A stretch of 64,000 bases of DNA from IMG/VR virus record IMGVR_UViG_3300032315_001715, positions 248,001-312,000 of that record. One strand, 5' to 3'. Positions 16,165 to 63,323 of this stretch are shown in pieces. The first letter of the stretch is position 1, and the number at the start of each line of letters is the position of its first letter. The notes under the pieces are model-generated. The model ran no database searches and had not been told where the DNA came from. It was given only the letters and a program-made list of their open reading frames with translations. The position numbers and the translations under genes are program-made.

Positions 16165-16168
16165 CTGC

Positions 16169-16174
16169 TAAATA
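16169..16174 (+). promoter_or_regulatory. Late promoter core TAAATA for the antisense GIY-YIG gene
   Basis: ctgcTAAATActctttGAGAGGtgttgtATG. Confidence 0.6.
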
Positions 16175-16192
16175 CTCTTTGAGAGGTGTTGT

Positions 16193-33260: not shown

Positions 33261-34088
33261 TTAAGGAAGTGATGCATAGATGTGCTGTTGCAACTGCAAA
33301 GTGAACCCATGTCTCATGGCCAGCAGTGCTGCATATTCATGATTGCCCTGATTGCTACTTTGATCCAAGAGACCCGGTGTCCAGAATGAAATTCTTTCAT
33401 CAACCTCGCTGCGCATCTCCAAGCTGGCGTTGTTGCCCACCTTTTCCGGCGCACGGTTGTAGATGTTCATGGGACTCACGTAAACGCTGCGTGGACCCTT
33501 TTGCCGACGGAATTCATACGCAAACTCCGGAACATCGTGATGATTGCTAGCAGCGTCTGAGCTCACCACGAACTTCAGCACGTTTGCCCGTGCAAACACG
33601 TCGGGTCGGATGTCACCATAGCGATTGGTGGTTTCGTTGGCCTTTGGACTCACCACCAGGGTGGTTTCTGCGGGCAACGGACGAAGGAAGTCGCCATTGC
33701 TTTCGATCTGTGTGCGGAAACCCTGTGCGTGCAGGAATTCTAGGAAACTGGTTAGATTCTTTTGCAGCATGGGCTCTCCGCCGGAGACCACGATCAGCAA
33801 CCGATCCATGAAGCTTTCACGCACGATCCCGTTGCTTGCCACTTCCTTGTCCACCGCACCGTGGATCTTGGCCAGCACCTGGTCAAAGGTCAACACGTCG
33901 CCGCTATCGAACCAAGTGTCGCAGAACGTGCAAGCACGATTGCACTTGCTAAAACGAACAAACACCGCCGGCTCGCCGCTGAACGGCCCCTCGCCTTGCA
34001 GGGTTGCAAATACTGACGTTACCATCAGTTCATTCTCGGCCATGTTCTTGAAAAACGTGGGCGAGACTATTTCATTTTTACCAAACAT
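33261..34088 (-). CDS. queE: 7-carboxy-7-deazaguanine synthase (radical SAM)
   Basis: TLQGEGPFSG.PAVFVR..CNRACTFCDT (CxxxCxxC), SGGEPMLQ, IESNG, VVSPK, LQLQQH. Confidence 0.9.
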   Translation of the reverse strand: MFGKNEIVSPTFFKNMAENELMVTSVFATLQGEGPFSGEPAVFVRFSKCNRACTFCDTWFDSGDVLTFDQVLAKIHGAVDKEVASNGIVRESFMDRLLIVVSGGEPMLQKNLTSFLEFLHAQGFRTQIESNGDFLRPLPAETTLVVSPKANETTNRYGDIRPDVFARANVLKFVVSSDAASNHHDVPEFAYEFRRQKGPRSVYVSPMNIYNRAPEKVGNNASLEMRSEVDERISFWTPGLLDQSSNQGNHEYAALLAMRHGFTLQLQQHIYASLP

Positions 34089-34091
34089 CTA

Positions 34092-34382
34092 TCATTCATC
34101 TCCAAACATGCTTGCTATTCCCGCTCTGGTCGACAACATCATTGCCGGACGGTCTATTAATTTCTGTCCTTCGGATTCAAACCACCGCAGCTTGTATAGC
34201 ATTGATGCTGCGGTTGTTTTTAACGCGCATGTGAGTAATTCCTCACAATAACCCCAATCCGTACCGGCATCTAACGAGTGCCGTAACCAATCTATTCTTT
34301 CGTTTATTTCATCGGGTGTTAGCTTGTGCCAATCAAGTAACAACACGTCGCTACCAAAATCATTCGAGCCTGTCATTATCAC
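34092..34382 (-). CDS. Small hypothetical protein
   Basis: W.....DWG...ASMLYKLRWF pattern. Confidence 0.5.
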   Translation of the reverse strand: MIMTGSNDFGSDVLLLDWHKLTPDEINERIDWLRHSLDAGTDWGYCEELLTCALKTTAASMLYKLRWFESEGQKLIDRPAMMLSTRAGIASMFGDE

Positions 34383-34719
34383 TCCTAAGTTCCATCAGAA
34401 CGGCTTTGCTGATCCTAGTTTGCAGCTCCTGGTCGAGGCGGTCAATAAACTCGTCGCTGTCCATGATTTTTGCCATCTTCAAGCACTTCTCCATTGCGCG
34501 CCGATAGATGCGCTCCGCAGCAGCATTTCCAATGGTATCAAGATCTAATATTGAGCTAAATGACCTAATTAATGCTCTAGAACCTCGGCTTGGAGGGCCA
34601 TGCCATGCGATCTCACCATCAAACGTGATCTCTAGCAGAGGCCTGCCGCCGGCTGCCTTTAGGGTAAACGCAGATGGATTGGTATGAACTGATACCGATC
34701 CTTGACTGGTCGTGGACAT
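34360..34719 (-). CDS. Hypothetical protein
   Basis: GGAG RBS before MSTTSQ. Confidence 0.6.
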   Translation of the reverse strand: MSTTSQGSVSVHTNPSAFTLKAAGGRPLLEITFDGEIAWHGPPSRGSRALIRSFSSILDLDTIGNAAAERIYRRAMEKCLKMAKIMDSDEFIDRLDQELQTRISKAVLMELRSDNDRLE

Positions 34720-34720
34720 T

Positions 34721-34969
34721 TTATTCTCCGTGATTTGAAACAATTTTCAGCATGGTATGGTATTCTTCCCAAAGCTGGGCTAAAGTAGGGTATTCATACC
34801 GAAGGCACTGTTGTTGATATGCATGCTTCCCAAGTTCTCGTAGTTGATCCAGGGAGAACCAAACATCTGGTGCAACCTGTATTTGCCTATCTTGATCATG
34901 CTTGCCAAAAGGACGGCGATAAATGGTTTTACCGCCGTCGGGACTTTCATAGATCCACTTAGTGGTCAT
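34721..34969 (-). CDS. Hypothetical protein
   Basis: MTTKWIYESPDGGKTIYRRPFG motif. Confidence 0.6.
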   Translation of the reverse strand: MTTKWIYESPDGGKTIYRRPFGKHDQDRQIQVAPDVWFSLDQLRELGKHAYQQQCLRYEYPTLAQLWEEYHTMLKIVSNHGE

Positions 34970-35129
34970 TGACCTTGCGTGCAACCACCGCATCATCTCG
35001 TATTTCCCAGGTGATTTCATCACCTTCGGTCCATCCAAGATCATTTAGCATCGTCGGATCAAAAACAAGGATGATCTCACCATCTTCTTCGGCTACCTTT
35101 GCGGTATAGGTTTTTGGTTCAATGTTCAT
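34959..35129 (-). CDS. AbrB/MazE-like DNA-binding protein
   Basis: V.EEDGEIIL.F...MLNDLGW.EGD.I.WEI pattern. Confidence 0.55.
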   Translation of the reverse strand: MNIEPKTYTAKVAEEDGEIILVFDPTMLNDLGWTEGDEITWEIRDDAVVARKVNDH

Positions 35130-35629
35130 GAAAATAAATCCTCGTTCCATTCGCGATGTCCTTCGCGATACGCCATGTTTGACACGGTTTCTCGTACTTC
35201 AACGCGGAAGCACCAAAGTCGTGCAGCTTCGCCTGGACCCCATATTTCCGGTACATAAACACCATTGACATACTTATAAAGCATATCTGCCAGGCCTTCG
35301 CAGCCTAGACGAGGTAGAATCGTCAGCTTAGCCATCTTTTTTCTTTCCAGCATCTTGAACGTTTCAAGTTCCGGATCGTCGGCGGATACCAGTAGAGTAT
35401 GGTCAAATTGATCCTCAAGGATCTTCTTGAGTTCCTTGAGTCCGCCATAATCTGCTACCCAGTTTCTAACATCTAGATCATTGGTGCCAAAATAAAACTT
35501 CATCGAAAATGCATAACCGTGAATCATATTGCAATGACTGTCGGCACGCCATTGCCGATATGCACAGGGGAACGAATTGTGATATTCTTTAGTCGAAACG
35601 TATTTGTATGTGGTTGGTTCAGTTGTCAT
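35126..35629 (-). CDS. queD: 6-carboxy-5,6,7,8-tetrahydropterin synthase
   Basis: SHCNMIHGY (CxxxHG), WVADYG.LK..K..L..FDHT, GCEGLA, VEVRET. Confidence 0.85.
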   Translation of the reverse strand: MTTEPTTYKYVSTKEYHNSFPCAYRQWRADSHCNMIHGYAFSMKFYFGTNDLDVRNWVADYGGLKELKKILEDQFDHTLLVSADDPELETFKMLERKKMAKLTILPRLGCEGLADMLYKYVNGVYVPEIWGPGEAARLWCFRVEVRETVSNMAYREGHREWNEDLFS

Positions 35630-35786
35630 TGTTAAGATTTCCTTGCAGATATCCAAATGTAAACAGATCTTGCATCATACTATTGGATACGATAGAAGTC
35701 CATGACTGGTCTCCATTTTGCTGGAAAACGATATTGGCCTGCTTACCAGCATCATTGACAATTGGTATCTTAATTACTCGTGTCAT
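35619..35786 (-). CDS. Small hypothetical protein
   Basis: AGGAG RBS before MTRVIK. Confidence 0.45.
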   Translation of the reverse strand: MTRVIKIPIVNDAGKQANIVFQQNGDQSWTSIVSNSMMQDLFTFGYLQGNLNNDN

Positions 35787-35886
35787 CTCTTGTCTCCTGT
35801 TGAGCGATGTTTGATGACTGTGCAGAATGTTTAAAGTGGGTTGAGACAGTCCATAGTCCACTTGGATAGTATTTACGGAACCTCCG

Positions 35887-36339
35887 TCAAATGAAAATAT
35901 TCAATTCGTGTATTTTGTGAGCAGTGTTGTTTCTTATTTGATCAGCAACCATGTCAACTGTTTTGATCAACTCGTGGTCTTCGATAGCATAGCATTCTTG
36001 TTGATTCTGATTCATCGCCATCCTAGATTTACTGAGAAGATTTTTTGATATTTCCTCAGCGTCAGATGTAGCATCATTGGTATCAAGTATGATCTCAGCA
36101 TAAATTCTAAAATCTATGCCAGGTTGGTTTCGTCCCCGCATCAGCGCTGTTGCAAACTTACCTCGACCTATCTTGAGAGGTCCACGTGCTTCTTTGTTAC
36201 TTTCGTGATCGACAACATGCGCTCTTCCAAAGTAAAGAAGATATCTTTCCTTGCCAGGTTTTTCTATATCCCCGGATCGCAGCCCTTCGTTGATGATACG
36301 ATTGCTGCGATATTCTTGGTAGCCAATTCCTTTGGTCAT
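35887..36339 (-). CDS. Hypothetical protein, possibly GIY-YIG/T5orf172-like
   Basis: YLLYF..LKIGR..R..E..QECY spacing; weak. Confidence 0.4.
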   Translation of the reverse strand: MTKGIGYQEYRSNRIINEGLRSGDIEKPGKERYLLYFGRAHVVDHESNKEARGPLKIGRGKFATALMRGRNQPGIDFRIYAEIILDTNDATSDAEEISKNLLSKSRMAMNQNQQECYAIEDHELIKTVDMVADQIRNNTAHKIHELNIFI

Positions 36340-36346
36340 AGAGTCA

Positions 36347-36418
36347 TCACTTCATTCTAGCAACGATGTTGAAGAATTCTTGCTTGAGATGCGGATCTTC
36401 TCGAAACTTACCGCGCAT
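36347..36418 (-). pseudogene. folE: Displaced original 3' end of folE
   Basis: MRGKFREDPHLKQEFFNIVARMK*, 18/23 identical to the current folE end MRGVFREDPSLKQEFFNIVSKMP*. Confidence 0.85.
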
Positions 36419-36429
36419 GCCCAACGCAT

Positions 36430-37284
36430 TCATATTTTTCGTCCTTTTATTGTTCTTCCTCGAATATAACCAGTTGGAGTGGGTTCGTCTATTTTGCAAA
36501 GTAAATTCTTTCCAGTATCTTGATTTGTGAACCATACATGAGTTACCGGTCTACCTTTGATAAAATTAGGAGGCGGGTTTGACTTTTTAGGTATTTGCTT
36601 TTGTTCACCGGTAATCGGATTGTAAAACCATGAAGATGCACATCTATGTGGGTTTCCATGCTTCCAGCCATTTGGAATCATTTCACCGTCTTTAATCAAC
36701 CTACATTCATTAGTAAATGGATTATGCACCCACCTACGTCCCCTATTGAAATCATTGCTTAATCTTACATGCTTAGACGGATCATACTCTAAAGCATGTA
36801 TCATTTGGTGTAGTCCTAGATTTGAATCCAGCACGTGAATTCGACCTCTCAACGGAGATCCTTGGTACTTACGATTTTTATTATTCTGCGATCTTCCATA
36901 CCAAAATCCTGGTATTAACGGTTTATTACTTGCTATCATGGTATCTATAACACCATTTGTGATCCAAGAAAGTGATGGTGCATTTTCAAATACCGAATTA
37001 CATTGATTTAAAAATAACGGATTGATACGAGCATTGACCCGATTGAGAACTGAAATTTCGTATGATTTGGCATCGTCGGCAGTATTAAATATCCGTCTAA
37101 TTTTTGGTTCAAATGAATTGTGACCATATGCCTTTATCAAGGTTCGAACTAACTTTGACGATGTAAAATATCGAATCCATAGATCTTTTGAAATTGTTTC
37201 ATCGGTAAGATGTTTTGCGTATCTGCATCCAATATACCATTGTCCGGTAATCTTAAATCGAAGACTATAAACATACGCAACCAT
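36430..37284 (-). mobile_element. Free-standing GIY-YIG homing endonuclease with repeated C-terminal DNA-binding modules
   Basis: AYVYSL....GQWYIG.R, YFTSSK, E..VL, repeated W.TNG/WVHNP/WFYNP/WFTN..P.GW/F..GR units; TAAATA at 37307-37312 and GAGG RBS. Confidence 0.85.
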
Positions 37285-37335
37285 GAGAACCTCATACCTT
37301 TTAAGGTATTTAGTTCTCATGTCGCTTATCCAGTT

Positions 37336-38007
37336 TTATGGCATCTTAGACACTATGTTGAAAAATTCCTGCTTTAGGCTAGGATCTTCCCTAAACACGC
37401 CTCTCATGACAGATGTGGTCATCGCAGAATCGTGCTCCATAACACCGCGCATGGTCATGCACATGTGCTCAGCTTGTACCAATACTGCAATTCCTTCAGC
37501 TTCTGTTGCTTCCACTATTGCATCGGCAATCTGTACGGACATTTCTTCTTGGATCTGTGGCCGGGCTGAAATCCAATGTACCAAACGGTTAAACTTGCTG
37601 AGCCCGATCACGTTCTTTCCTGGAAAGACTCCGATGTAGCACTTGCCTCTGATACCCTGGAAATGGTGAGCACAGGTGCTGCGTATGCTGATCGGACCGG
37701 TAACATACACCTCATCATATTGATTGGCGTTAGGAAACGCGGTGATCTTTGGCTTTGGTAGGTAGCGGCCGGCAAATGTTTCTAGAACAAACATCTTTGC
37801 CACACGCCTTGCTGTGTCGTGGGTGTTGTGATCGTTGTCCGTGTCAATCACGAGGCTTTCGAGCACGCCCTGCATCTTTCCGGTAACCTCATCGATCAGG
37901 GCATCAAAATCAATGTCCCCAACCGCTTCGCTGATGTTGTCATTGCAGTAAAACCTGCTATCGCTTTCCTTGAGCCGATTACGGATCGTTTCGCTAGGTG
38001 TTGTCAT
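37336..38007 (-). CDS. folE: GTP cyclohydrolase I
   Basis: DTARRVAKM, STCAHHF, GLSKFNRLV..RPQIQE, AEHMCMTMRGV. Confidence 0.95.
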   Translation of the reverse strand: MTTPSETIRNRLKESDSRFYCNDNISEAVGDIDFDALIDEVTGKMQGVLESLVIDTDNDHNTHDTARRVAKMFVLETFAGRYLPKPKITAFPNANQYDEVYVTGPISIRSTCAHHFQGIRGKCYIGVFPGKNVIGLSKFNRLVHWISARPQIQEEMSVQIADAIVEATEAEGIAVLVQAEHMCMTMRGVMEHDSAMTTSVMRGVFREDPSLKQEFFNIVSKMP

Positions 38008-38067
38008 GTTGGTATCCTTTCTATAGGGAGTATAGCTAAAAGCGTGCTGGTAAGCACAAGATCTTTC

Positions 38068-38535
38068 CTAGACGGTTCCGTTTGCACCAGGGACTCGCAT
38101 TGGCTTGCTGTTCGGATATGACGTACTAATGGATGTCATCGTTGCAATGCTTGCCCCGATTGCCCCGGTTGCCCCGGTTGCTCCGATGGTCAACGGTGTG
38201 TAACCACCTGAAGCGCCGCCACCCGTCCATGTGATGGTCGTTGGAGCTAGAGCAATGCTGGCCATTGTCATGGAGTCCGTAAGGGTATCTACCCATAAGC
38301 TCGATGATAGATCAGATACATCATTCTTTAGCTTGGCCTCCACGGGATCCATTCCGGTTTCGACCATCACCGTGATGATCTTTCGCATGCCGTCAAGTTC
38401 TTTCTGCACGGCATGTGCTTTGGCCGTTAGCTCATCCATGGAAGCACGCACGGTTTTCATTTGCCGTGAAATGTCATCCAAGTCCTGTCGTGTTTGCCGA
38501 TATTCTTTAAAGTAGTCTAAAATTGCGTCATTCAT
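38068..38535 (-). CDS. Hypothetical protein (coiled coil plus low-complexity GAT tail)
   Basis: GGAGG RBS; GATGATGAIGA repeat. Confidence 0.55.
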   Translation of the reverse strand: MNDAILDYFKEYRQTRQDLDDISRQMKTVRASMDELTAKAHAVQKELDGMRKIITVMVETGMDPVEAKLKNDVSDLSSSLWVDTLTDSMTMASIALAPTTITWTGGGASGGYTPLTIGATGATGAIGASIATMTSISTSYPNSKPMRVPGANGTV

Positions 38536-39062
38536 AGTGGCGTATCCTCCGAGTATTTTCTCCATGGTGTAAAGACTTTTCGATCCTGTAACGTATGGAG
38601 ATCGTGGCACCAAACACCGGGATTGGTAGCATTGAAATCTTTGTCGTCGATCTTCAATGTGGCATTATAGCCAAGCAATCCAATGTAGGGTATTTTTACC
38701 GAGATCTGTGGAATGAAATTGGTCTTTTCACTGTATCCACCTTCGCACACCCAATCGACGTGCTTGACATCAAAATCAAGGGTCACCATGCAACCAAGAT
38801 CAAGCACGTCGTTGATCATCTTGTCCCAGCTTGCACTTTCAAGACTGGTACCGTCATGCCAATTTCCTGGATTGAAACTTTGATTAGCACCGAGATAGAT
38901 ATGATCACATCCAGATGCTGTAACATGATCTTTGATCGAACCGATATCGTGGATACCGACAACGAATAGTGTTTTCATTGCATATGCCGGTGTATGTTCA
39001 ACCTCAATGCCGGTGAAAAATTCCACGTCATTTCTAATACCAGTATCATATTCACGCTTCAT
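38532..39062 (-). CDS. Conserved hypothetical protein coupled to dpdA
   Basis: FFTGIEVEHTPA..MKTLFVVG, HIY.GAN.SF, LKIDD.DF.ATNPGVWCH; start overlaps the dpdA stop region. Confidence 0.75.
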   Translation of the reverse strand: MKREYDTGIRNDVEFFTGIEVEHTPAYAMKTLFVVGIHDIGSIKDHVTASGCDHIYLGANQSFNPGNWHDGTSLESASWDKMINDVLDLGCMVTLDFDVKHVDWVCEGGYSEKTNFIPQISVKIPYIGLLGYNATLKIDDKDFNATNPGVWCHDLHTLQDRKVFTPWRKYSEDTPL

Positions 39063-40692
39063 CAAAATCCTCCATTTCCATGCTGACGTTGTTATCGGCA
39101 TCCATCCCGGTAATATTACGCAGAAGCTTCTCATGCTTGTTGATGAGATCCATTGGACGCTCCGATGTTAGTATTTCTGGACACAAATCCTTAAACTCAA
39201 GAAGATCGGGAGTAACATGGTTATTCGCTTCTAACAGCGGTTGGTCTTGCCATCGGCAAGCATCCTGTATGGCCCGTATATGCAGCTCAACATTATGATG
39301 CATTGCGATCAAATACGAGAATCCATCCATCGAGCTGGGCCATTTAACCTGGTACTTTTCGTATTCCTTATCAAACGATCCTCCAAAATCAAATAGACCC
39401 CCGTTACCTCGATCGTGTGCGAGGTACTCCTTGTATGCGTCCGTCCATCGAAACTTGTCACCGCATCGACCTTCCGGAGTGGAGGGATACCAATCACTTT
39501 CAATTTCCTTCTTGGAGAATGGTATTTTCTTGTAATCCAAATCGTCGTATCCTCGAACACAGATATCGCCAACCGTGCAACGGCGGCCTATTTCCGTGGG
39601 CATGATCACACCCTTGCGATCATTTGCAATGACCCAATCATTGATCAGCATTTGGCTGTTCTTTAGGGACTTGTCATCCACGATTGAACCGCCCTTGAAA
39701 CGCATGTTGCGATGGCTGTTTTCATATCCATAATACATCTGACCCTTGGCTGTCATCACGAACGGCGATGCTGCATCAAAGCTCAGGGTGATGTTTGGAT
39801 TAATGAACTGCCTGATGTTTCTTTGCAGCGTGGTTAGTGCGCAACCGGCCTTGATCTTGCCATTACCTAGATAATGCAGCCAATCCCTGCCATCAAGATA
39901 TTTGCCGTCTCGCATGATGATCAACCTACGCAGATTGATGGCAAAGTTCGAAGCTTGCACGTTGGAGAATGCCCAGGTTTCAAACGGAAGGTCCTTGACC
40001 GCATCCCACCAAATGTCGCCTTCGGCTTCGTTTCTTCCCTGCAACACGTTGAGGAATTTGGTAGCACCTTCCTTGCGATGCTTGATGAAAAAATCGTAGT
40101 TTTCAAGCGACACGTTCAAACAGTCCCTGAAGGTCTTCATACCAGGATGCAGGCTTTCCCCGGTTACCGGATCGAATCCAAACTTAACCAGACCGTATGT
40201 AGGGACATCGAGCACCATGGAATAATCCGCGGTGTGTTCGAGCCACCGAAGGATTTTCATGCGCATCTTATCCTTGTCCTGCTCCCAGTCCTGATCTGTT
40301 TGCTTGCCTTTTTTGGTCCACGGCCATTTCAACACACCCGTGGCAATTTGGAATCCGCCCGAGTCTCCTAATATAACCGTGTTGGATCTATCCCTCTTTT
40401 GCACCATGCTTTCATAAATGTCACTGTCTGCTGGATCAAGATACGCATGACCAGCTGAGTAAAGTGCCGCCGGATAATACATCAGGCTGTTCTTTTGGTT
40501 TAAAAAGTCCAAATCAATGCGATCGTTATTAAGTCCGTCTGGTAACCGGTCTCGAACGGTGTATTCAGGCATGCTGACGATCTTGGCATAGATCGCACTG
40601 ATGCTTGGAAGGAATACGGCATAGTCCTTTTGTGACTCGGCTAAGTTCAACGCTTGTGGATGCAAGTCTAGTTGTTTGGAAAATAAATTCAT
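39052..40692 (-). CDS. dpdA: DNA 7-deazaguanine transglycosylase (TGT-like, DpdA2 type)
   Basis: LGDSGGFQ, MVLDVP, NVLQG, WLHYLG, SFDAASP TGT-fold motifs within a folE/queD/queE neighbourhood. Confidence 0.85.
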   Translation of the reverse strand: MNLFSKQLDLHPQALNLAESQKDYAVFLPSISAIYAKIVSMPEYTVRDRLPDGLNNDRIDLDFLNQKNSLMYYPAALYSAGHAYLDPADSDIYESMVQKRDRSNTVILGDSGGFQIATGVLKWPWTKKGKQTDQDWEQDKDKMRMKILRWLEHTADYSMVLDVPTYGLVKFGFDPVTGESLHPGMKTFRDCLNVSLENYDFFIKHRKEGATKFLNVLQGRNEAEGDIWWDAVKDLPFETWAFSNVQASNFAINLRRLIIMRDGKYLDGRDWLHYLGNGKIKAGCALTTLQRNIRQFINPNITLSFDAASPFVMTAKGQMYYGYENSHRNMRFKGGSIVDDKSLKNSQMLINDWVIANDRKGVIMPTEIGRRCTVGDICVRGYDDLDYKKIPFSKKEIESDWYPSTPEGRCGDKFRWTDAYKEYLAHDRGNGGLFDFGGSFDKEYEKYQVKWPSSMDGFSYLIAMHHNVELHIRAIQDACRWQDQPLLEANNHVTPDLLEFKDLCPEILTSERPMDLINKHEKLLRNITGMDADNNVSMEMEDFDEA

Positions 40693-40742
40693 GTTTTTCT
40701 ACCTTGTACCTAGTATGATCATCTAGGTGGTCTGAGTCAATT

Positions 40743-41864
40743 TTAAGATAACAAGGCGTTCATCAACGGAGTTGCCCTGATGTATCTATCCAGCATTGCT
40801 AGCTGGCTTAACATGCTAGTTCTGATGAAATTGCTATCAGAATGCTCCATGAGGCTGCGTATCTTTCCCATGAGTTTTTCTCGATTCTGCTCGTAGCTGG
40901 CAAAATCCTTGGTCCATTCTTCTGGATATTTTAACCCGGCATCATACATCTCGGTATAGCTCAGTCGATTTGGTACCAACGGTATTGCGCCGCATATCAA
41001 ACCTTCTATCATGCTGATGCCATACGTTTCCTGCAGATTGGCAGAAAATACCATCTTGCTTTGCCCGAGCATGGTATGATATTCGTGCTTGGATAGCTCG
41101 CGTTCCTGGCATACCACCCATTCATACTCTGGCATGTGGTTAGCAAGATCCTTAAAGATATCAAGTTGCTTCTCTGGAGCAAGACGATGTGGAAACGCGA
41201 TTTGATTCTTCTTTTCCATGGCCGTGTATGGCTCTAGAACGCTCTTTAGATAATCCATCGGCCAGCCGGTGATATCGACCTTGCGATTTACGATCCAATT
41301 GGCCTTAACCTCATCGAACGTCGGAGCAAATGCTTCATTGTAGAATGGTCCCCATAGATTTTCTATGAACATGTCTAAATGAAAATTGGTTGCAAACCAA
41401 TTGGTATCATACGCTGCCATCATGGCTTTTTCGGAATGTCGAACCCAGGGTGCGTTACCGATCAGTCTACCTAGGAAATCCTGTGGATCATAACTACCAG
41501 CATGCCACATACCATGGATTTCAACCGGTATGTTCAATAGTTCGCTCATGTATCGAACCGAAATTACCGATGGATTCCACGCATCGGTAAAGAGGAATCG
41601 ATCACCTGGTTTAACGCGACCATGCTGGAATTCAGCAGCTATAGCACCTAGCTGAGAGCTCTTGTAGATGTTTGTTGCACCAAAATCAAGAAATGCACCG
41701 GGCGTTGGAACCGGTGGTACTTGCTCACCGTCAACGACGATGATATCAATTTTCTTTCCCATGACCGCGGCCTGTTTCTCGAGGGAAACAGGGATATGTT
41801 CATACCATTGCCTGGTATATCTGGTGTCAATCGGTTCAATTGGTACGATATATATTCGTGTCAT
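40743..41864 (-). CDS. GT-B fold glycosyltransferase
   Basis: WHAGSYD, FPHRLAPEKQ, SANLQETYGISMIEG..GAIPLVP..SY.E (GT4-like ExFG/E motif). Confidence 0.8.
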   Translation of the reverse strand: MTRIYIVPIEPIDTRYTRQWYEHIPVSLEKQAAVMGKKIDIIVVDGEQVPPVPTPGAFLDFGATNIYKSSQLGAIAAEFQHGRVKPGDRFLFTDAWNPSVISVRYMSELLNIPVEIHGMWHAGSYDPQDFLGRLIGNAPWVRHSEKAMMAAYDTNWFATNFHLDMFIENLWGPFYNEAFAPTFDEVKANWIVNRKVDITGWPMDYLKSVLEPYTAMEKKNQIAFPHRLAPEKQLDIFKDLANHMPEYEWVVCQERELSKHEYHTMLGQSKMVFSANLQETYGISMIEGLICGAIPLVPNRLSYTEMYDAGLKYPEEWTKDFASYEQNREKLMGKIRSLMEHSDSNFIRTSMLSQLAMLDRYIRATPLMNALLS

Positions 41865-43095: not shown

Positions 43096-44103
43096 TTACT
43101 TGTTGGCACGCACCGAAACTAGATTTTTTTCAAAGATATCAGTGCAGGCTTTCCATGTGAAACGCCTGCTGCTTTCCTCCACCATCTTTCGATCAAGATT
43201 TAAGCACACGTTTATGGCTTCGGAAAGATCGTCAGCTATACACCCGTCCACTCCGGGTGTGATGATATCGATCGGACCTGTTACCGGATATGCTGCTACC
43301 GGGGTGCCACATGCCATGCTTTCAAGCATCACCACGCCGAATGTGTCGGATCGGCTGGGAAATACAAACACGTCTGCATTGGCATAATATCGCGCTAGGC
43401 TGGCCCCTTTTTTATAACCAGCGAATATAACATCGGGATATTTAGATTTAAGAGTTTCAAGATACGGACCATCACCTACTAGTATCTTTGTTCCCGGTGT
43501 TTTGATCGAGCAAAAGTCATCAAGTCCTTTTTCGGGACTAGCGCGGCTAACACAAAGTAGAACCGGTTTTCCAGCAAGATTTGTTTTGCGCTGATCCGTG
43601 TTAAAAGTGTTATGATCGACGCCTCGGCTCCATATCACAAGATTGTTGAATCCTTTGCTGCGTAGCTCTTGTTCCATGGTAGCAGTTGTTACTAAAACTC
43701 GATGACTGAACTTGTGGAAGACTCGCATGAAAAAATAGCCCACCCTGACTGGTATTCCGTGGTGTATCTTGAGATATTCGGGAAACTTGGTGTGATAGCT
43801 GGTATTGTGCGGTATCTTCCTGTGCCTGACCTTGCAATACCACCTTGCGGCGATACCTAGTGGCCCTTCAGTGGCTATGTGTATGAAGTCAGGATTAAAA
43901 TTCTCTATCAATCTGCCAATTTTCCAAATATCCCATGATAATCTAACCTCAGGATATCCTGGCATCGGAATGGTACGGAAAAGTCCCGGTTCTATGACCT
44001 GTACCTCATATCCGCGTTGTTGCATTTCTAATACAGTGGCCCGCAAGGTAGTGACCACCCCGTTTACGTTATCCCAGGTGTCTGTTACCACTGTTAGTTT
44101 CAT
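43096..44103 (-). CDS. GT4 glycosyltransferase, Agt-like (glycosyl-diacylglycerol synthase)
   Basis: VTDTW.NVNGVVTTL, HIATEGPLG..AR, TSYHTKFPEY, WSRGVD, EKGLDDF, FVFPSRSDTFGVVMLESMACGTPVAAYPVTGP. Confidence 0.8.
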   Translation of the reverse strand: MKLTVVTDTWDNVNGVVTTLRATVLEMQQRGYEVQVIEPGLFRTIPMPGYPEVRLSWDIWKIGRLIENFNPDFIHIATEGPLGIAARWYCKVRHRKIPHNTSYHTKFPEYLKIHHGIPVRVGYFFMRVFHKFSHRVLVTTATMEQELRSKGFNNLVIWSRGVDHNTFNTDQRKTNLAGKPVLLCVSRASPEKGLDDFCSIKTPGTKILVGDGPYLETLKSKYPDVIFAGYKKGASLARYYANADVFVFPSRSDTFGVVMLESMACGTPVAAYPVTGPIDIITPGVDGCIADDLSEAINVCLNLDRKMVEESSRRFTWKACTDIFEKNLVSVRANK

Positions 44104-44876
44104 TTGTATGTTTCATAGATCTTCATTGATCCGTCCTCTTCCAACAATAATAGCTGAAATTCGCCATCATGCGTTTCGACAAGAACCGAGCATGTTTCTA
44201 CCCAATCGCCGTCGTTGGCATAAATCACGCCATTTATTGCTTTTATGGCAGGAGTATGTATGTGTCCGCATATGACACCGTGGAATCCATTGCTCTTGGC
44301 ATGTGCAGCCAAATGTTCTTCAAATTTGTAAATGAAATTAAGTGCTTGCTTGGTTCTACCTTTGACATATTTGCTGAGGCTCCAATAACCAAGACCAACT
44401 AGTTTTCTCATACGATGTATTAGACCGTTGCACATCAACAGGGCAGTATATGCACGATCACCTAGAATGCTCACCCATTTCCAATGCCGTGTTACCTGAT
44501 CGAATAGATCACCGTGTGTGACAAGCCATTTTCTACCATGTAAATCAACATGTGTGATTTGATTTGATATGGTGATATTTCCGGTCTTAAGACCATGCTT
44601 CAACCACGGACGAAGGAACTCGTCATGGTTTCCGATGATGTAGTGGATCTTTGTGCCTCTCTTGGCTTTGGTTAGAAGCCGGCGAACAACATTGCTGTGT
44701 TCTTGCGGCCAATGCCACCCCCTTGAGAGCTTCCACCCGTCGACGATATCCCCAACAAGATATAATGTATCCGAATTGTTGTTCTTGAGGAAGTTGCAAA
44801 GCTGGTCGGCTTTGCAACCTTTCGTACCAAGATGTATGTCTGATATCCAGATTGATCTATATTGCATTTTTCCCAT
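44100..44876 (-). CDS. plcP: PlcP-type metallophosphoesterase (phospholipase C; LpxH-like family)
   Basis: ISDIHLG, LYLVGDIVDGW, WPQ.H..VVR.LL.KA..GT, GNHDEFLR, HGDLFD, LGD.AY, YWSLS, GVICGHIH, NDGDWVETC. Confidence 0.8.
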   Translation of the reverse strand: MGKMQYRSIWISDIHLGTKGCKADQLCNFLKNNNSDTLYLVGDIVDGWKLSRGWHWPQEHSNVVRRLLTKAKRGTKIHYIIGNHDEFLRPWLKHGLKTGNITISNQITHVDLHGRKWLVTHGDLFDQVTRHWKWVSILGDRAYTALLMCNGLIHRMRKLVGLGYWSLSKYVKGRTKQALNFIYKFEEHLAAHAKSNGFHGVICGHIHTPAIKAINGVIYANDGDWVETCSVLVETHDGEFQLLLLEEDGSMKIYETYK

Positions 44877-44977
44877 CCAACAGCGGTCTTGATTATGTCA
44901 ACAACAATCATACCTATCATTGACGCAGAGAGATCGGTATATTTGCACCATTGAATGCTTATTGCAGTTTGGATGGT

Positions 44978-45009
44978 AAAAACGCCTGCCGATATAGCAG
45001 GCGTTTTTT
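44978..45009. terminator. Bidirectional intrinsic terminator
   Basis: AAAAACGCCTGC-cgatata-GCAGGCGTTTTTT. Confidence 0.85.
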
Positions 45010-45091
45010 AGACTACCAAATATAACGTCTAATATACTCTCGCCCATGCGTGTTATTTAGGCTTGGGCGATGGGAATAAACCTGTGGTTAA

Positions 45092-46227: not shown

Positions 46228-47241
46228 TTAAAAACTGAATAGATCACCAAAACTGTTGGCTTCTTTGTTTGAATCTAAATCCCAGCGCAGCACGCCGAGG
46301 AGGTTTTTTACCTTCTTGTCTATCAATGCGGCTTCCATGGCCTCATCATCAAATGGTAACTGCTTGAACCATTCTGGCAAGGTAAGCTCATCGACCGGAT
46401 ATGCCACCGAAGTTAACCCGCTGGGATTTGGCCGAAGCTTGCAAACGATAACCTTAAATCCATCTTGGATTGGCATGGAGTAATGATCATTATGGATTTT
46501 TTTGAGCCTGTTCCAATTAATGGATGCAAGAACATGCCCGGGTATCATGGATTTCTTGCCTGGGTCTCCGCCCTTCCAATCAACCTTTCCCTGTAAGTCC
46601 ATCACGTTTTGATAATGGGTTATCTTGTTAGCACGTTTCGGTGAACCTTTCAACCATCCAGGCCAGCTACGGAATTCCTTACGGAATGCCAGTATCTTCT
46701 CATGAATGTCACCTTCTGTCGATCCGGTCAATACTGCCGTTAATATATCACTGAGAAAGTCTTGCACGATCTTAGGAGTATCACTGCGCTTGAGATCCAA
46801 TCCCATGGCCTTGATCTCGCCAGGCTTGCCGTTGAGATCCTTGCGCTTGCCTTCCTTGTCATAAATCAGCACCGCATAACGCTTCTTGGTGATGAATAAT
46901 CCCTTGTATGCACACAATTCTCGAGCAGCACGGATGATGGCACCGTTTTCTTCTGGACAATTGAATGCTTGGTTCATAAACTCAGGAAAGCTGTCGTTGG
47001 TCATGTCGCCGATGTTATCATACAGCTTGCTGACATTTTCCTTGGTCCACTCAAAGTCCTTGAACTCTGGCTGATCCTTCATCACTGGATATGCGCTGAA
47101 ATACCCAGAATTATGGACTAGTAATCCGTTAGCAAAAAAATATGGATGATTCGTATCCATTCCTACATCATATACATATTCGTCTTCAAATTCTCCAAGA
47201 TCCTCAACAGATGATATCTCTGTTAGGTAATGTTCCACCAT
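46228..47241 (-). CDS. polB: Family B DNA polymerase, C-terminal part preceded by C-intein
   Basis: After HN: SGYFS, GLFITKKRYA, KAMGLDLKRSDTP; AAGAGG RBS inside the endonuclease 3' end. Confidence 0.9.
   Translation of the reverse strand: MVEHYLTEISSVEDLGEFEDEYVYDVGMDTNHPYFFANGLLVHNSGYFSAYPVMKDQPEFKDFEWTKENVSKLYDNIGDMTNDSFPEFMNQAFNCPEENGAIIRAARELCAYKGLFITKKRYAVLIYDKEGKRKDLNGKPGEIKAMGLDLKRSDTPKIVQDFLSDILTAVLTGSTEGDIHEKILAFRKEFRSWPGWLKGSPKRANKITHYQNVMDLQGKVDWKGGDPGKKSMIPGHVLASINWNRLKKIHNDHYSMPIQDGFKVIVCKLRPNPSGLTSVAYPVDELTLPEWFKQLPFDDEAMEAALIDKKVKNLLGVLRWDLDSNKEANSFGDLFSF
47110..47241 (-). mobile_element. C-intein (44 aa) of a naturally split intein
   Basis: MVEHYLTEISSVEDLGEFEDEYVYDVGMDTNHPYFFANGLLVHN|S: block F VYD, block G FFANGLLVHN, Ser+1. 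Confidence 0.92.
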
Positions 47242-48266
47242 TTTACAACCTCTTTTATTACAGTGTTTGCATCTTTTATAAAGTCAGTTTCCCAGATTAT
47301 TTTTAACGAAAACCCCCTGGTAGTCGCAGCTTTTATCTTAGCATAATCATATGCCCAAATATTGTTAGCTGTCATTTTGAGATGAGGATGATAAAATGAA
47401 GATTCATACATCAATGGGTTACAATGCCAATAATCGCCATTGAATTCGATAATTTTCATACGTTGGCTATCTGTTATATCATAAAAACATGGAGATTGTA
47501 ATACATCGCTCCATATACAAAACTGATTGGTCTTTACTGTATATTGAAGTGATGCACCGAGACTACTTTCTACATATTCAATAAATGCGAGTTCGGCTTT
47601 AGAAGTATATCCTCTATTGTTTCTTTTGGATAAAATCTCTAAAGCTGTTGGTTTATCTACTGAATATTTTGACATTATCCAATCTATGTTAGAAGATTTA
47701 CCTTTTTCTCGATTGTAGTCGATCCATTTTTGGTATCCATCTAGTCCATATTTCTTTTCAAAATAATCTAAACTATTAGTGTATCGTTGTTTCTCAACAT
47801 AATTTTCCCATATTTGCAAGCCAACCTGCTCTCCATGACGAGCTATACATTTTTCCTCAGTTACGGCACGAGACCGGTTGAATTCGTTAAATTCCTCAAC
47901 AGACCAACCGTATTTTTCTTTCTTGGTTTCATAAAGATTTTTGACTCTTTGTTTTTCTCGATAAGATTCCCATTTCTGTAGGCCAATTTCGTTGCCATAT
48001 CTAGCTAGATATGTTTCTTTTGTCCGTCTGGTACTGTTTTGTCGTAGAAACTCAAATCTCTTAACAAGGTCAGTTAAGTCGTATGATACGAGATGACAAA
48101 ATGTATTATAGTAGCCGTTAATCAACGACACTCCGTTTGATATCATATGATCATACAACAGATGTATTTTTTCTACCTCACATTGAGAATATGATCGTTG
48201 ATTTGTAGCCGCTCTAAACCTAGCCGAGTTTATTACATCGTTGATGTTATCAATTTTCTTTGGCAT
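47223..48266 (-). mobile_element. Free-standing Vsr-like (PD-(D/E)xK) homing endonuclease between the polB halves
   Basis: Repeated YG...G...W..Y.EKQR units; SKAE..F; FYDI....KIIEFNGDYWHCNP; D..K...A..RGF.LKIIWE; TAAATA at 48289-48294. Confidence 0.85.
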
Positions 48267-48319
48267 GTTGTGCGCTCCTATTATGAGTTATTTATTCACA
48301 ATAGAAGCTGTATTGTGAC

Positions 48320-48667
48320 TCACAACGAAATTATTTTATCACCGACCGAAAGTTCCGTTGGCTTCTTGCTAACAAGCCGACCATCGTCGGTGACTACCAT
48401 GATCGAATGGTCAGCAGTGACGATCACGCTTTTGCCATCTGAGGTATTAACTCGATATTTCTTTTTAGATACCTTATGACGATATACGTAATTATACGTG
48501 GTCCAATCGGTGGTTTTCGAGGAATGATCATATCCAATTAATTTGATTTGGTCATTAACAGAATACTCTTTGTCTCCGTCATTCCAGAATAAACTACCAT
48601 TCAGAAACAGATCTTCGATGGTTCTTTTTCCGACTGAGGTTTCGATGATTGACGCAGAATCAACCGA
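48320..48667 (-). mobile_element. N-intein (115 aa) of a naturally split intein
   Basis: YGDTD|SVDSASII (block A, Ser1), VTADHSIMV (block B TxxH), KPTELSVGDKIISL*. Confidence 0.92.
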
Positions 48668-50566
48668 GTCAGTGTCTCCATAGATGCAGGAAATACCAAC
48701 ATGGTTGTAATCACCGGTGATGATCTCGTTGATCTTACCCTGCATGTGCTTGACGATGCAACGTCCACTTAGCGTAACGCTTTGTGCAACTCTAGGATCA
48801 TACCATCGACTACCGGGATTACCGATAGCGCCGTAGAGGCTGTTCAGCAGGATCTTCTTGATCAGCTGTCGTTGGTCATAGAAATCCGTAAGCTTTTTAT
48901 ACTCCGCTCGCTTGTCTGGATCGGTCTCCTCGTCTGCCATCTTGGCGTATTTCTTCATTTCAGCCTGTAGCTGCTTTCTCTCAGCATACCATCTAGCCAA
49001 CAATCCGGGTATGATGCCCTTTTTATCAAGCGTAAACAGCGTGCCATTTGCTGATATGATCAGCCTCTTGCCGCTTTTAAATACCAAATCATACAGCTCA
49101 CTTGCCGAAACCGTGGATGTTGACCCGTCCTCAAAATCCACGGTTATTGGCGTGAGATCCTGGTTCATCACCTGGTTGTATTCCAATGTGCCAAACATAC
49201 CGCTCCATGCATCAGCAAAGCTTTTCTTTTCCTGCTTCATGCGCTTGTAGATCAGCTTATCGGTGTATTCTGGACGTATATGGCCGATCACTGTTTCAGG
49301 GCTCATGTTTAGGGCACGAATCGCCGACGGATACAGTGAGTTGATATCAACACCACCGATCCAGTCGTGCATGCCTTCCTTGGGATCGGCAACGTATGCG
49401 CCGGCCACACCGGTAATGCCAACGTCACTGTCGTCATTATCATCGTCGTCGCCACCGCCATACGTTTCTCGTTCAGACTCGTCTCTCTTGCGATTTGGTA
49501 CCACCATTCCTAGATCATGTGCTTCATTAACAATGGCCTGATCGATCAATGCTACGGCACCCATGGTAGTTCCTAACAACACACAATTTTCATGTGCGAG
49601 GTTGCTGCTGAGCTCAATGAATTTGTTTTTTCGGTCAATTTTAACCAGCAGCATGACATCCTGCCGATTGTATTCGATAAACTTTGCAAAATCATTGTTA
49701 TAAAGCTTATCTAAGCTACCTTCATAGTGTATTTTCTTATCACCGACCTCATATTCTCCCACGAAATCAAGCCGATAACTATGCATCTCGTGATAGGTGT
49801 TCTTGCGGTAAAGCTGTAGATAATCCATGTGTATCCGACCGACGAGATCATATGTAATGGTATCTCGCCCGTAGCTTTCGTACTCACGTCGCTTTGGAAG
49901 TTTGTTCCACAGGCACAGCTTGCGGGTTTCTTCCTTACCAAGCAGTTGAACGATTCGATTGTGTATGTAAGGGATATCAAAGCCCTCGGAGTTCCAGCCC
50001 GATAGGATGTCAGCATCCTCAATCAAGTTGAGGAATACTTCCAACATCTCCTTTTCTGTGGCACACAAAACCGTGTCGTCAAAGTTGCTAACGATTTCCT
50101 GGGCATCCTCAACGCTTAATCCTTTCGGCTTGAGCACCATGGTGAAGTTGCGATCAAACCAGTTCAAATACACGGAGATAGCCGTGATCGGTGCAAATGC
50201 ATCATCAGGGCTTGAGAAGCCGCGCTCCGGGTCAAAGTCAACCTCAATGTCGAAAAATGCAAGATGCAGATCGGGACTTGGTGCTCCCTTGTAGTTGTCA
50301 TACAAGCAGCGGAATATTGGATTGATGTCGCTCTCATGTAACTGGCTTTTTGCCAGCATGCTGGTTTCGCGCTGGAATTCCTTGAGCTTGTTGGTCTGGA
50401 ATTTATCGCAAAGCTGTCCATGTATATTGGGAATCTTCCCCCGTGGGCTGGGCCAATATGCTATGTATTTTGCCGGGTATTCACGAAACTGGCGATTCCC
50501 GTTCTTGTCCCGTTCGGCAACAAGTATCTGATTTTTTTCTCGTTCCAAGAACGCATCTACATACAT
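48320..50566 (-). CDS. polB: Family B DNA polymerase, N-terminal part (3'-5' exonuclease plus motifs A-C) fused to N-intein
   Basis: FFDIEV, GWNSEGFDIPY, YNRQD, DINSLYPS, KILLNSLYG, YGDTD. Confidence 0.95.
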   Translation of the reverse strand: MYVDAFLEREKNQILVAERDKNGNRQFREYPAKYIAYWPSPRGKIPNIHGQLCDKFQTNKLKEFQRETSMLAKSQLHESDINPIFRCLYDNYKGAPSPDLHLAFFDIEVDFDPERGFSSPDDAFAPITAISVYLNWFDRNFTMVLKPKGLSVEDAQEIVSNFDDTVLCATEKEMLEVFLNLIEDADILSGWNSEGFDIPYIHNRIVQLLGKEETRKLCLWNKLPKRREYESYGRDTITYDLVGRIHMDYLQLYRKNTYHEMHSYRLDFVGEYEVGDKKIHYEGSLDKLYNNDFAKFIEYNRQDVMLLVKIDRKNKFIELSSNLAHENCVLLGTTMGAVALIDQAIVNEAHDLGMVVPNRKRDESERETYGGGDDDDNDDSDVGITGVAGAYVADPKEGMHDWIGGVDINSLYPSAIRALNMSPETVIGHIRPEYTDKLIYKRMKQEKKSFADAWSGMFGTLEYNQVMNQDLTPITVDFEDGSTSTVSASELYDLVFKSGKRLIISANGTLFTLDKKGIIPGLLARWYAERKQLQAEMKKYAKMADEETDPDKRAEYKKLTDFYDQRQLIKKILLNSLYGAIGNPGSRWYDPRVAQSVTLSGRCIVKHMQGKINEIITGDYNHVGISCIYGDTDSVDSASIIETSVGKRTIEDLFLNGSLFWNDGDKEYSVNDQIKLIGYDHSSKTTDWTTYNYVYRHKVSKKKYRVNTSDGKSVIVTADHSIMVVTDDGRLVSKKPTELSVGDKIISL

Positions 50567-50641: not shown

Positions 50642-51646
50642 TCAATGGTAATGGAGACCAGCTGCTATCGTTTCCTGATAGGTTCTGCTGCTGTACCATT
50701 TATATGAATCTAATATTATATCAGTATTGGTTCTTTTTGGTTTCCATCCAATTGAATCACCGATGGCAGAAATATCAGCAATGCTAATCGGAGGATCACC
50801 GGTGCGCCAATCACCATAAAAGTATGGTAGATTTTTTCCCAGCAGTGATTCCGATAGATCGACCATTTCCTGCACGCTAGTGCCAGCGCCGCTACCGAGA
50901 TTCATTGCATAGGCACCTGGATTGGAATCTAACCAATCTATGGATTGCTCAACGGCTTCGGCAAGATCCATGACATGGAGATAATCTCGAATTGCTGTGC
51001 CATCCTTTGTGTTGAAATCATTTCCAAAGATCTCAAGTTTCTTACCAAATGCTGCACTTTCCATCATTTTTGGTACCAAAAACGGTGCGTTCTGTAGGTG
51101 ACCTAGATCGTACAGATTGTGAGAACCGGAAACATTAAAAGTTCTAAAACTTATGCTGCTAATTCCATGCGCAATGTAACAATCGCGCAGTAGATATTCG
51201 ATGCTGAGCTTTGATCGGCTGTTTGATTTCAACGGTAAGAGCTGACAATTTTCATTTTTAGGAGAATCTAAATTAGCATATACATCGGCGGTGCTGAAGA
51301 ATATGAATTTATTGATACCAAATTCTGCTGCGTATTTTAACAGCTCAACCGATTTGATAACGTTGTTTTCCCAGATCGATATTGGATCAAGCAGGGATTT
51401 TGTCGGGCCTAACTCCTCCGCACAGTGTATGATGGTATCCGGTCGATAGCTGCTTATGGCCTGTAATACCACATTGCTGGTTAGATCTTCGTCGGCAAAC
51501 AAATCACAGTATTTTGTAATATGCGGTAACACCGCTGCTTTTTTGTCGATCAGCATCACGCTGTGATCGGTGGTGCTTTTTAGATGGGCAGCAATGTGGC
51601 TACCAATATAGCCACACCCTCCGGTTATGAAGATCCATTTGGTCAT
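50642..51646 (-). CDS. galE: UDP-glucose 4-epimerase-like extended SDR (catalytic Tyr replaced)
   Basis: ITGGCGYIGSH, FRTFNV.G, IFGNDF.T.DGT.IRDYLHV.DLA, NLGSG.G.SV; YxxxK reads NSRSK. Confidence 0.8.
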   Translation of the reverse strand: MTKWIFITGGCGYIGSHIAAHLKSTTDHSVMLIDKKAAVLPHITKYCDLFADEDLTSNVVLQAISSYRPDTIIHCAEELGPTKSLLDPISIWENNVIKSVELLKYAAEFGINKFIFFSTADVYANLDSPKNENCQLLPLKSNSRSKLSIEYLLRDCYIAHGISSISFRTFNVSGSHNLYDLGHLQNAPFLVPKMMESAAFGKKLEIFGNDFNTKDGTAIRDYLHVMDLAEAVEQSIDWLDSNPGAYAMNLGSGAGTSVQEMVDLSESLLGKNLPYFYGDWRTGDPPISIADISAIGDSIGWKPKRTNTDIILDSYKWYSSRTYQETIAAGLHYH

Positions 51647-61871: not shown

Positions 61872-62177
61872 TTACAACCATGTCAATGTGAAAAGTGCGC
61901 GATCACCAGAGTTTGAGAACCAAAAAAGATACTGTCCAGAATTAAGCTCGTCGGGAAAATCACCCCAATCGCCGTCAAAATAATCAAGCCAGCCTTCCAT
62001 GGCCTCAAACAGGATGGATCCAGGACGATCATCACCAAACCTCTCCCTGCACCATGCTCGCATGTCTCCGATCTGCGTCATGCGTTCCTTGGGGATCGAC
62101 ACGCAATGTCCCAACACATATCGAATGAGATCTGGCCGGGAATACCCGGTGAAATCGTCCCGTTCGGTTTGCATCAC
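61872..62177 (-). CDS. Small hypothetical protein (F.F....D.ALF.L.W family)
   Basis: AWCRERFG..W..FWFSNSGDRALFTLTW. Confidence 0.6.
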   Translation of the reverse strand: MMQTERDDFTGYSRPDLIRYVLGHCVSIPKERMTQIGDMRAWCRERFGDDRPGSILFEAMEGWLDYFDGDWGDFPDELNSGQYLFWFSNSGDRALFTLTWL

Positions 62178-63322
62178 AGGAACCAGTGCGGTACCACGCG
62201 GCTGCGATCACGAACGATCTCCCGATCATGATCACGAACGATCATGCCGGCGGATTTGTTACCTACCACCCAGCTACCAATCACCGCATGATTACCGTCC
62301 TGCTTGAACAGGTTGGCACGCTGCTGATAGATCCTGCGGCCCTGGTAAATGCCATCGGTCTTGTCCACTACTTGCCCAGAGCTAACAATGTCAATGTTTG
62401 CGCCCTCGCGGCTCAGCAGAGGCTTGGCAACGTAATCCGTGGTCATCTCCTCGGCGGTCCACTTGGCCGGCAGGATGTTGGGGTGGTCCGGGAACATCTC
62501 ATGTAGGATTGGCAGGATGCCCTTGTTGCTAAGGATCATCTTCCAAACGGGCTCAACGATACCGCTGACGTCGTTGCGTGTATAGCTGCCGAAGTCATCG
62601 TCCGTCATCCACTCCCAGGGATAGAGCTTGAACCAATACTTGATCTGACGATCCTCTAGGTCCACGAACTTGCCATCCAGCCAGCCGATCTTGGCAAGAT
62701 CGATGAAATCCGTGTCCATGCCGGCCTGCGTGGCCAGGTCTTGTAGATACCGACAGGTTTGGCGCTCCTCCTCGTTTTCCTCGTAGCCAGCAAAGTAAAA
62801 GCGCTCACCCGGGGTCATGATGGTGCGAAGCTCACCAAATCGTTCCTGTAGCTTTTCGTGCAGGCTGTTGAACTGATCGCAGCCCTTGTGGGTGTCCTGC
62901 AACCAGAACCACTGCATCAGCGCGCTTTCAATCACCATAGTGGGCGTATCGGCGTTGTATTCCAGCATCTTGGGCAGCGACTTGCCATCGTAGGCAAAGT
63001 CAAAACGCCCATACAGGCTCGGATCCTGACGAGCCCAGCTCCACTGGATGTAATCGTGATAGAGCACGGGAATGCCCATCTTTTTCATGAGGTCGGTGTC
63101 CTTGAACACACGATCCACGGCTTCGATGCAGCGATCATGGCACTCTTCCGTGGCAGCTTCAAGCTCGTCCACTTCAGCAGCGGTGAACTCATAGGCCACG
63201 CTTTCGTCCCAATAGGTGCCATCGCCACCGTCGGCTGGCAATCCAGCCGTGTGGTAGGTAAACCCGATTTCTTCAGCCCGCTCGGTCCAATTAGCCCGAG
63301 GCTTAACCACATGTCGCTTCAT
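62174..63322 (-). CDS. Glutathionylspermidine synthase-like ATP-grasp ligase (YgiC family)
   Basis: YWDES..Y.F, LYGRFDF, KMLEYNADTPT, FNSLHE, FKLYPWE, EP.WKMILSNK.IL, KP.LSREGANI. Confidence 0.9.
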   Translation of the reverse strand: MKRHVVKPRANWTERAEEIGFTYHTAGLPADGGDGTYWDESVAYEFTAAEVDELEAATEECHDRCIEAVDRVFKDTDLMKKMGIPVLYHDYIQWSWARQDPSLYGRFDFAYDGKSLPKMLEYNADTPTMVIESALMQWFWLQDTHKGCDQFNSLHEKLQERFGELRTIMTPGERFYFAGYEENEEERQTCRYLQDLATQAGMDTDFIDLAKIGWLDGKFVDLEDRQIKYWFKLYPWEWMTDDDFGSYTRNDVSGIVEPVWKMILSNKGILPILHEMFPDHPNILPAKWTAEEMTTDYVAKPLLSREGANIDIVSSGQVVDKTDGIYQGRRIYQQRANLFKQDGNHAVIGSWVVGNKSAGMIVRDHDREIVRDRSRVVPHWFL

Positions 63323-63323
63323 G

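Follow-up and report, generated by a model that had tools for sequence, protein, structure and literature searches.

Why would a giant phage carry two adjacent genes that look like a bacterial lipid-remodelling operon, and are they what they appear to be? An earlier note, made from the sequence alone, had described a plcP-like metallophosphoesterase gene that overlaps a GT4 glycosyltransferase gene, both with full motif sets, and had proposed that the phage could use them to mine phosphorus from the host membrane. To investigate this, we analysed a 64-kb stretch of DNA (the window), which is part of, and matches at 100%, the 452,799-bp IMG/VR viral contig UViG_3300032315_001715 from lake water. 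We found that the observation in the note is correct, and that its assignment of the two genes to the PlcP and Agt families is supported, whereas the physiological part of its proposal rests on inference.

A plcP-agt pair in a giant lake phage

First, we examined the genes themselves. Both lie on the minus strand, where an ORF of 258 aa (44100-44876) is followed by an ORF of 335 aa (43096-44103). The junction reads ...acatacaaATGAaacta..., so that the TGA stop of the first gene overlaps the ATG of the second at 44100-44103 in an ATGA that would couple the two. The same zero-gap junction is seen in three relatives (L002, L004 and L087). Close relatives of the first protein begin at MQYRS and are 256 aa long, and the real start of this gene is therefore probably the second ATG, at 44867 rather than 44876. 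Pfam profiles assign Metallophos/Metallophos_2 to the first protein and Glyco_transf_4 plus Glycos_transf_1 to the second.

The surrounding DNA is that of a T4-superfamily giant phage: it encodes a T4-type PolB, ThyX, an RNA ligase, MazG, a PNKP-type phosphatase and several homing endonucleases, it gives PHROG hits, and it occurs in lake-water sequencing runs. By PolB, the nearest cultured relatives are jumbo phages of Pseudomonas (PA5oct group), Salicola, Sinorhizobium and Agrobacterium, at 42-48% identity, none of which has the phosphoesterase. Near-identity DNA searches against GenBank phages found no close relative. No tRNAs were found that might point to a host, and our trees gave no clear bacterial donor.

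Next, we asked how the pair might be transcribed. A strong terminator-like hairpin followed by a T run lies at 44978-45008 (minus strand), between the upstream 273-aa gene and plcP (-19.7 kcal/mol, z = -6.4), and is conserved in the 95%-identical relative L002, suggesting that the pair has its own transcription start. However, a sigma-70 promoter scan found fewer sites than in shuffled sequences, and an alignment of the upstream regions of seven phage relatives showed no shared motif beyond the closest relative. A search with the E. coli-type Pho box, which need not resemble that of the phage's own host, found no site in 44877-45091 and only chance-level hits across the window. Short contigs from a lake run labelled metatranscriptomic lie only over plcP-agt (43262-44704), but since that run is flagged as probably DNA and was found with this very sequence, we do not count it as evidence of expression.

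PlcP and Agt rather than LpxH or another GT4

The note had set clustering with LpxH or with other GT4 clades as the result that would overturn its reading, and we therefore tested both proteins for it. As reference sequences we used Burkholderia, SAR11-family and Pseudomonas operon members, as stand-ins for SMc00171, Atu2297, MED193_17359, PA3219, PA3218 and WP_008545403.1. On the NCBIfam LpxH equivalog model the phage phosphoesterase scored 49.9 bits against a cut-off of 190, while in a control run E. coli LpxH scored 389 and the phosphoesterases from Burkholderia and SAR11-family plcP-agt operons scored 36 and 47. BLASTP against E. coli LpxH aligned only 120 residues, at 25% identity. In contrast, the phage protein is 49% identical (72% similar, E = 5e-90) to a Burkholderia protein that is also deposited under B. 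cenocepacia, a species in which plcP-agt-dagK (BCAL2364-66; the characterised K56-2 plcP is BCAL2364) has been shown genetically to drive glycolipid formation under phosphate limitation (PMC13691135). Characterised PlcPs are themselves only 46-47% identical to one another (PMC8528852). In a maximum-likelihood tree E. coli LpxH sits on a branch of about 10 substitutions per site, and the phage protein lies inside the PlcP family.

The metal-binding motifs of the metallophosphoesterase (D13-x-H15, G42-D43, G82-N83-H84-D85, H121-G122-D123 and G204-H205-x-H207) are all present and invariant among 30 homologues. An AlphaFold model (pLDDT 85) predicts a calcineurin-like core plus a helical insertion at about residues 124-195, and its best PDB fold match is LpxH bound to lipid X (TM 0.57-0.60, 19-23% identity), which fits a lipid-directed phosphoesterase. 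We therefore regard it as a PlcP-family (LpxH-like) protein and a predicted intracellular phospholipase C.

For the second protein we turned to the definition of the Agt/GTcp clade of GT4 by Wei et al. (PMC8231724): a His104-Asp256 dyad, with Asp where other GT4 enzymes have Glu; the GRVAxEKN and FPSxTDTFG motifs and a Gly-rich motif; and the DAG-contacting residues Thr162, Arg163 and Trp320. These residues were shown to be needed by mutagenesis of SAR11 GTcp. At the aligned positions the phage protein has G15, G80, G83, H104, S159, R160, R187, K192, D253, T254, F255, G256, E261 and W317, each conserved in at least 58 of 62 operon-linked homologues; for H104, D253, R187, E191, K192, the FPSRSDTFG motif, E261, G15, G80 and G83 the figure is at least 60 of 62. 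The exception is position 159, equivalent to Thr162, which is Ser in 31 sequences and Thr in 24; this Thr-to-Ser change is the only departure from the residues shown to be essential. The protein is 46% identical over 330 residues (E = 3e-103) to B. cenocepacia Agt, which alone makes MGDG and GADG in E. coli (PMC13691135), and at most 22% identical to any solved GT4, in keeping with the 40-58% identity seen within the clade and under 25% to other GT4. Its weak NCBIfam hits show the same pattern as those of bacterial Agts, and its model (pLDDT 91) has a predicted GT-B fold with GT4 structures as the best matches. We conclude that it is an Agt-clade retaining glycosyltransferase, predicted to be a diacylglycerol glucosyl/glucuronosyl(/galactosyl) transferase, although its sugar cannot be predicted because characterised members differ in specificity (PMC8231724; PMC8528852).

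Linkage between the two families is also found in bacteria. A scan of species-representative genomes returned at least 598 bacterial relatives of the phosphoesterase, the best of which are 48-56% identical and come from Alpha-, Beta- and Gammaproteobacteria. In 55 of the best 80 loci, a GT4 that is 40-48% identical to that of the phage lies directly downstream, and these include lineages in which plcP and agt have been characterised experimentally. This is the plcP-agt operon described by Sebastián et al. (PMC4796936). We looked for dagK in one Burkholderia locus (L075), but the ORF after agt there has no Pfam hit.

Conservation and spread among phages

To ask whether these are working phage genes, we compared them with their relatives. 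Against relatives at 94-95% protein identity both genes have a dS of about 0.6 and a dN/dS of about 0.05, indicating strong purifying selection; relatives at 65-75% identity could not be used because synonymous sites were saturated. Independent assemblies from several samples, including a 485-kb JGI contig and an abundant lake-phage type seen in over 100 contigs, keep the same order of epimerase, PolB, clamp-like gene, plcP, agt and then the FolE cluster, with 65-76% protein identity. A single 56.6-kb contig in the source run spans the region at even depth. The epimerase (50642-51646, minus strand) is GalE-like, scoring 243 bits on the NCBIfam galE model against a cut-off of 262; it is only a possible supplier of the sugar donor, as a link to the pair is not shown. 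PDB sequence searches with the three downstream neighbours of the pair returned nothing.

Related copies are common in uncultured phages. Pelagibacter phage Mosig has a 54%-identical copy next to pstS, annotated as UDP-2,3-diacylglucosamine hydrolase, and an alignment-based scan of IMG/VR confirmed at least 581 stretches that encode PlcP relatives. Of the best 80 of these, 23 have agt directly downstream. In a 160-kb contig, PlcP and a GT2/GT21 (Pgt-like) lipid glycosyltransferase sit between the two RNR subunits; in a 118-kb contig the order is PhoX, PstS, PlcP, Agt, close to a homing endonuclease and a fatty-acid desaturase; and a 353-kb contig carries the pair in yet another context. All 32 viral Agts sampled fall on one side of a branch with SH-aLRT 98, which suggests long residence and phage-to-phage spread. 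The 83 viral PlcPs need only two label changes on their tree, with five bacterial rows nested among them, two of which are long-branch rows. Because sampling was biased towards sequences similar to our query, viral monophyly remains provisional.

In the roughly 8.4 million papers and preprints searched, we found no report of phage plcP or agt, so the note's statement that no phage version has been characterised holds within that literature, although uncharacterised copies are clearly frequent. Viromic surveys do list viral 'lpxH (K03269)' under LPS biosynthesis, and NCBI names Burkholderia PlcP as LpxH. We suspect that viral PlcP is probably hidden under that label. The enzymes are ordinary members of known families; what is new is the carrier and the viral clade.

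Predicted function and comparison with known systems

We propose that the pair converts host phospholipid to glycolipid during infection. In this view PlcP, a Mn-type metallophosphoesterase with an LpxH-like lipid-binding cap, would cut host glycerophospholipids to diacylglycerol plus a phospho-headgroup, and Agt, translationally coupled to it, would transfer glucose, glucuronate or galactose from a UDP-sugar onto the diacylglycerol, thereby refilling the membrane with phosphorus-free glycolipid. The headgroups (glycerol-3-phosphate, phosphoethanolamine) can enter host metabolism, but since PlcP does not itself release inorganic phosphate, a further phosphatase step by the host or another phage gene would be needed to free it. 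This would lower the phosphorus locked in membranes while a genome of 452,799 bp, which holds about 906,000 phosphorus atoms per copy, is replicated. A bacterial cell holds on the order of 10^6 to 10^7 phospholipids, and by this estimate, which is not a result, the pool is quantitatively relevant. Our analysis establishes family membership, intact catalytic residues, purifying selection and conservation in phages, whereas phospholipid hydrolysis, glycolipid synthesis and other activity in infected cells, sugar specificity, and phosphorus economy as the selected benefit are inferred without biochemical or lipidomic data. We are highly confident of the enzyme families and fairly confident of lipid remodelling in infected cells, and although phosphorus saving is the favoured benefit, we put the chance that it is the main one at about even. 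The note's suggestions of independence from the host PhoB response and of effects on superinfection or lysis timing likewise remain inference.

The strongest alternative, which we consider plausible though less likely, and not exclusive of the first, is that the chemistry is the same but the altered envelope is what is selected, by blocking superinfection, changing receptor display, stabilising the membrane while host phospholipid synthesis is shut off, or tuning lysis. Lipid remodelling and aminolipids have been linked to phage attachment and to predator-prey trade-offs (PMC9938194, PMC9457565, PMC9804370), no E. coli-type Pho box lies upstream, and the 64-kb window holds no PhoH, PstS, alkaline phosphatase or other phosphate-regulon gene. 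However, in other phages the module sits next to PhoX-PstS or pstS, which points to phosphorus stress. Much less likely, the pair could belong to the neighbouring 7-deazaguanine/pterin cluster, with the GT4 glycosylating a modified base or a pterin and the phosphoesterase working on nucleotides, since it lies beside FolE, PTPS, a radical-SAM protein, a TGT/DpdA-like protein and another glycosyltransferase, and the GT4 gives weak PDB hits to tetrahydrobiopterin glucosyltransferase (BGluT). These hits are local only (residues 177-306, E = 6e-10; 18-19% identity in the fold alignment), while the Agt match is full length at 46% with the DAG-binding residues kept apart from the Ser for Thr; moreover, the deazaguanine cluster has its own virus-specific glycosyltransferase, and in other phages PlcP-Agt occurs without that cluster. 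The JGI and NCBI names, which would make the genes LpxH of lipid A synthesis and a cell-wall or LPS glycosyltransferase, are rejected on the LpxH scores, alignment and tree given above, even though LpxH is the nearest solved fold. Inert passenger DNA or mis-assembled bacterial DNA, for which we found no specific support, is rejected on the purifying selection, the conserved position in independent assemblies and the even depth of the spanning contig.

A broader possibility, which we put forward only tentatively, is that a virus-specific lineage of PlcP-Agt (and PlcP-Pgt) has spread among many large aquatic phages, letting them strip phosphorus from the host's own membrane and refill it with glycolipid, and that it has gone unnoticed because annotation pipelines call the genes LpxH and 'LPS biosynthesis'. 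If so, infected cells in phosphorus-poor lakes and oceans would have a distinct lipid make-up, and giant phages could afford their large genomes. Lipid remodelling is a major bacterial response to phosphorus scarcity and phage replication is phosphorus-hungry. A phage-encoded PlcP-Agt would be a new class of auxiliary gene. It would alter how viral 'lpxH' hits in AMG surveys are read, and it bears on phage-host-grazer interactions, which depend on membrane lipids.

Finally, we compared the pair with the closest known systems. The phosphoesterase shares its predicted fold and metal-binding motifs with PlcP (SMc00171 of Sinorhizobium meliloti, MED193_17359, PA3219, BCAL2364), the LpxH-like phospholipase C of phosphorus-stress lipid remodelling, and sits immediately upstream of agt as in the bacterial operons, but it is encoded by a giant phage, has no recognisable Pho box, overlaps agt by ATGA instead of being separated by a 30-440-nt gap, has no dagK, and falls in a phage-dominated branch of the family. 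The glycosyltransferase is like Agt/GTcp (Atu2297, SAR11 HTCC7211 WP_008545403.1, PA3218 and PA0842, BCAL2365) in length (335 vs 334 aa), in the His104/Asp256-type dyad, in the R..EK and FPSxxDTFG donor motifs and in the DAG-binding Arg and Trp, and differs in the replacement of Thr162 by Ser, as in half of the family, and in the separate clade formed by the sampled viral copies. LpxH (UDP-2,3-diacylglucosamine diphosphatase) shares a calcineurin-like core plus a helical lipid-binding cap with the phosphoesterase, but at only 19-25% identity and with an equivalog score far below the cut-off. The phosphorus-stress auxiliary genes of cyanophages and pelagiphages (pstS, phoA/phoX, phoH) are likewise host-derived genes carried by aquatic phages and linked to phosphorus supply, and are physically adjacent to plcP in Mosig and in the viral contig L186; however, those genes import or scavenge external phosphorus, whereas this module would redistribute phosphorus already inside the cell and rebuild the membrane.

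Fractured and apparently split genes in the window

PolB is a fractured gene (46228-50566, minus strand). A 748-aa N part ends in an intein N block and is followed by a free-standing 347-aa ORF (phrog_22677), after which a 337-aa ORF begins with the intein C block (...LLVHNS) and continues as the PolB C part. The relative L004 has one uninterrupted 924-aa PolB. This may be a naturally split intein with its endonuclease as a separate gene. The T4-type RNA ligase 1 (15559-17408) also appears split, with the N domain at 16788-17408 (minus strand), the C domain at 15559-16164 (minus strand), and a GIY-YIG endonuclease ORF on the opposite strand between them (16193-16816).

A putative DNA-modification cluster and other genes in the window

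The region at 33261-41864 (minus strand) looks like a 7-deazaguanine DNA-modification cluster. It holds a radical-SAM protein, PTPS/QueD (35126-35656) and FolE (37336-38007), a 546-aa protein with a DSGGFQ motif whose nearest language-model clusters are viral TGT/DpdA-like, and lastly a 373-aa virus-specific GT-B transferase whose structural neighbors include tRNA-queuosine mannosyltransferase. The DNA base may be glycosylated. A GalE-like UDP-glucose 4-epimerase (50642-51646, minus strand), which scored just under the NCBIfam cut-off (243 vs 262 bits) and is syntenic upstream of PolB in all relatives, could supply UDP-galactose to one of the glycosyltransferases. Glutathionylspermidine synthase-like and DUF1190 genes (62174-63941, minus strand) lie in a stretch of 55.8% GC, against about 45% elsewhere, and may be a recent acquisition.

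Relatives of plcP-agt in other sequences

A lake run labeled metatranscriptomic holds short contigs at 91–99% identity over plcP-agt only (43262-44704) and none on the flanks, although the run is flagged as probably DNA. Among bacterial sequences, the PlcPs at three loci from Hyphomonas and Pseudomonadota MAGs (L006, L011 and L012) nest inside the viral PlcP group and lack a downstream agt, which may reflect phage-to-bacterium transfer, a prophage or a binning error. Two human faecal phage contigs (MT836169.1 and MT835982.1) encode phosphoesterases 41% and 23% identical to the window's PlcP, and the family may also occur in gut phages. Finally, other large IMG/VR phages carry PhoX-PstS-PlcP-Agt together with TerC, two guanylate cyclases and a fatty-acid desaturase, and others carry PlcP with a GT2/GT21 transferase wedged between the RNR subunits (L186, 6267-11907 and 17625-18350; L153, 74-5464).
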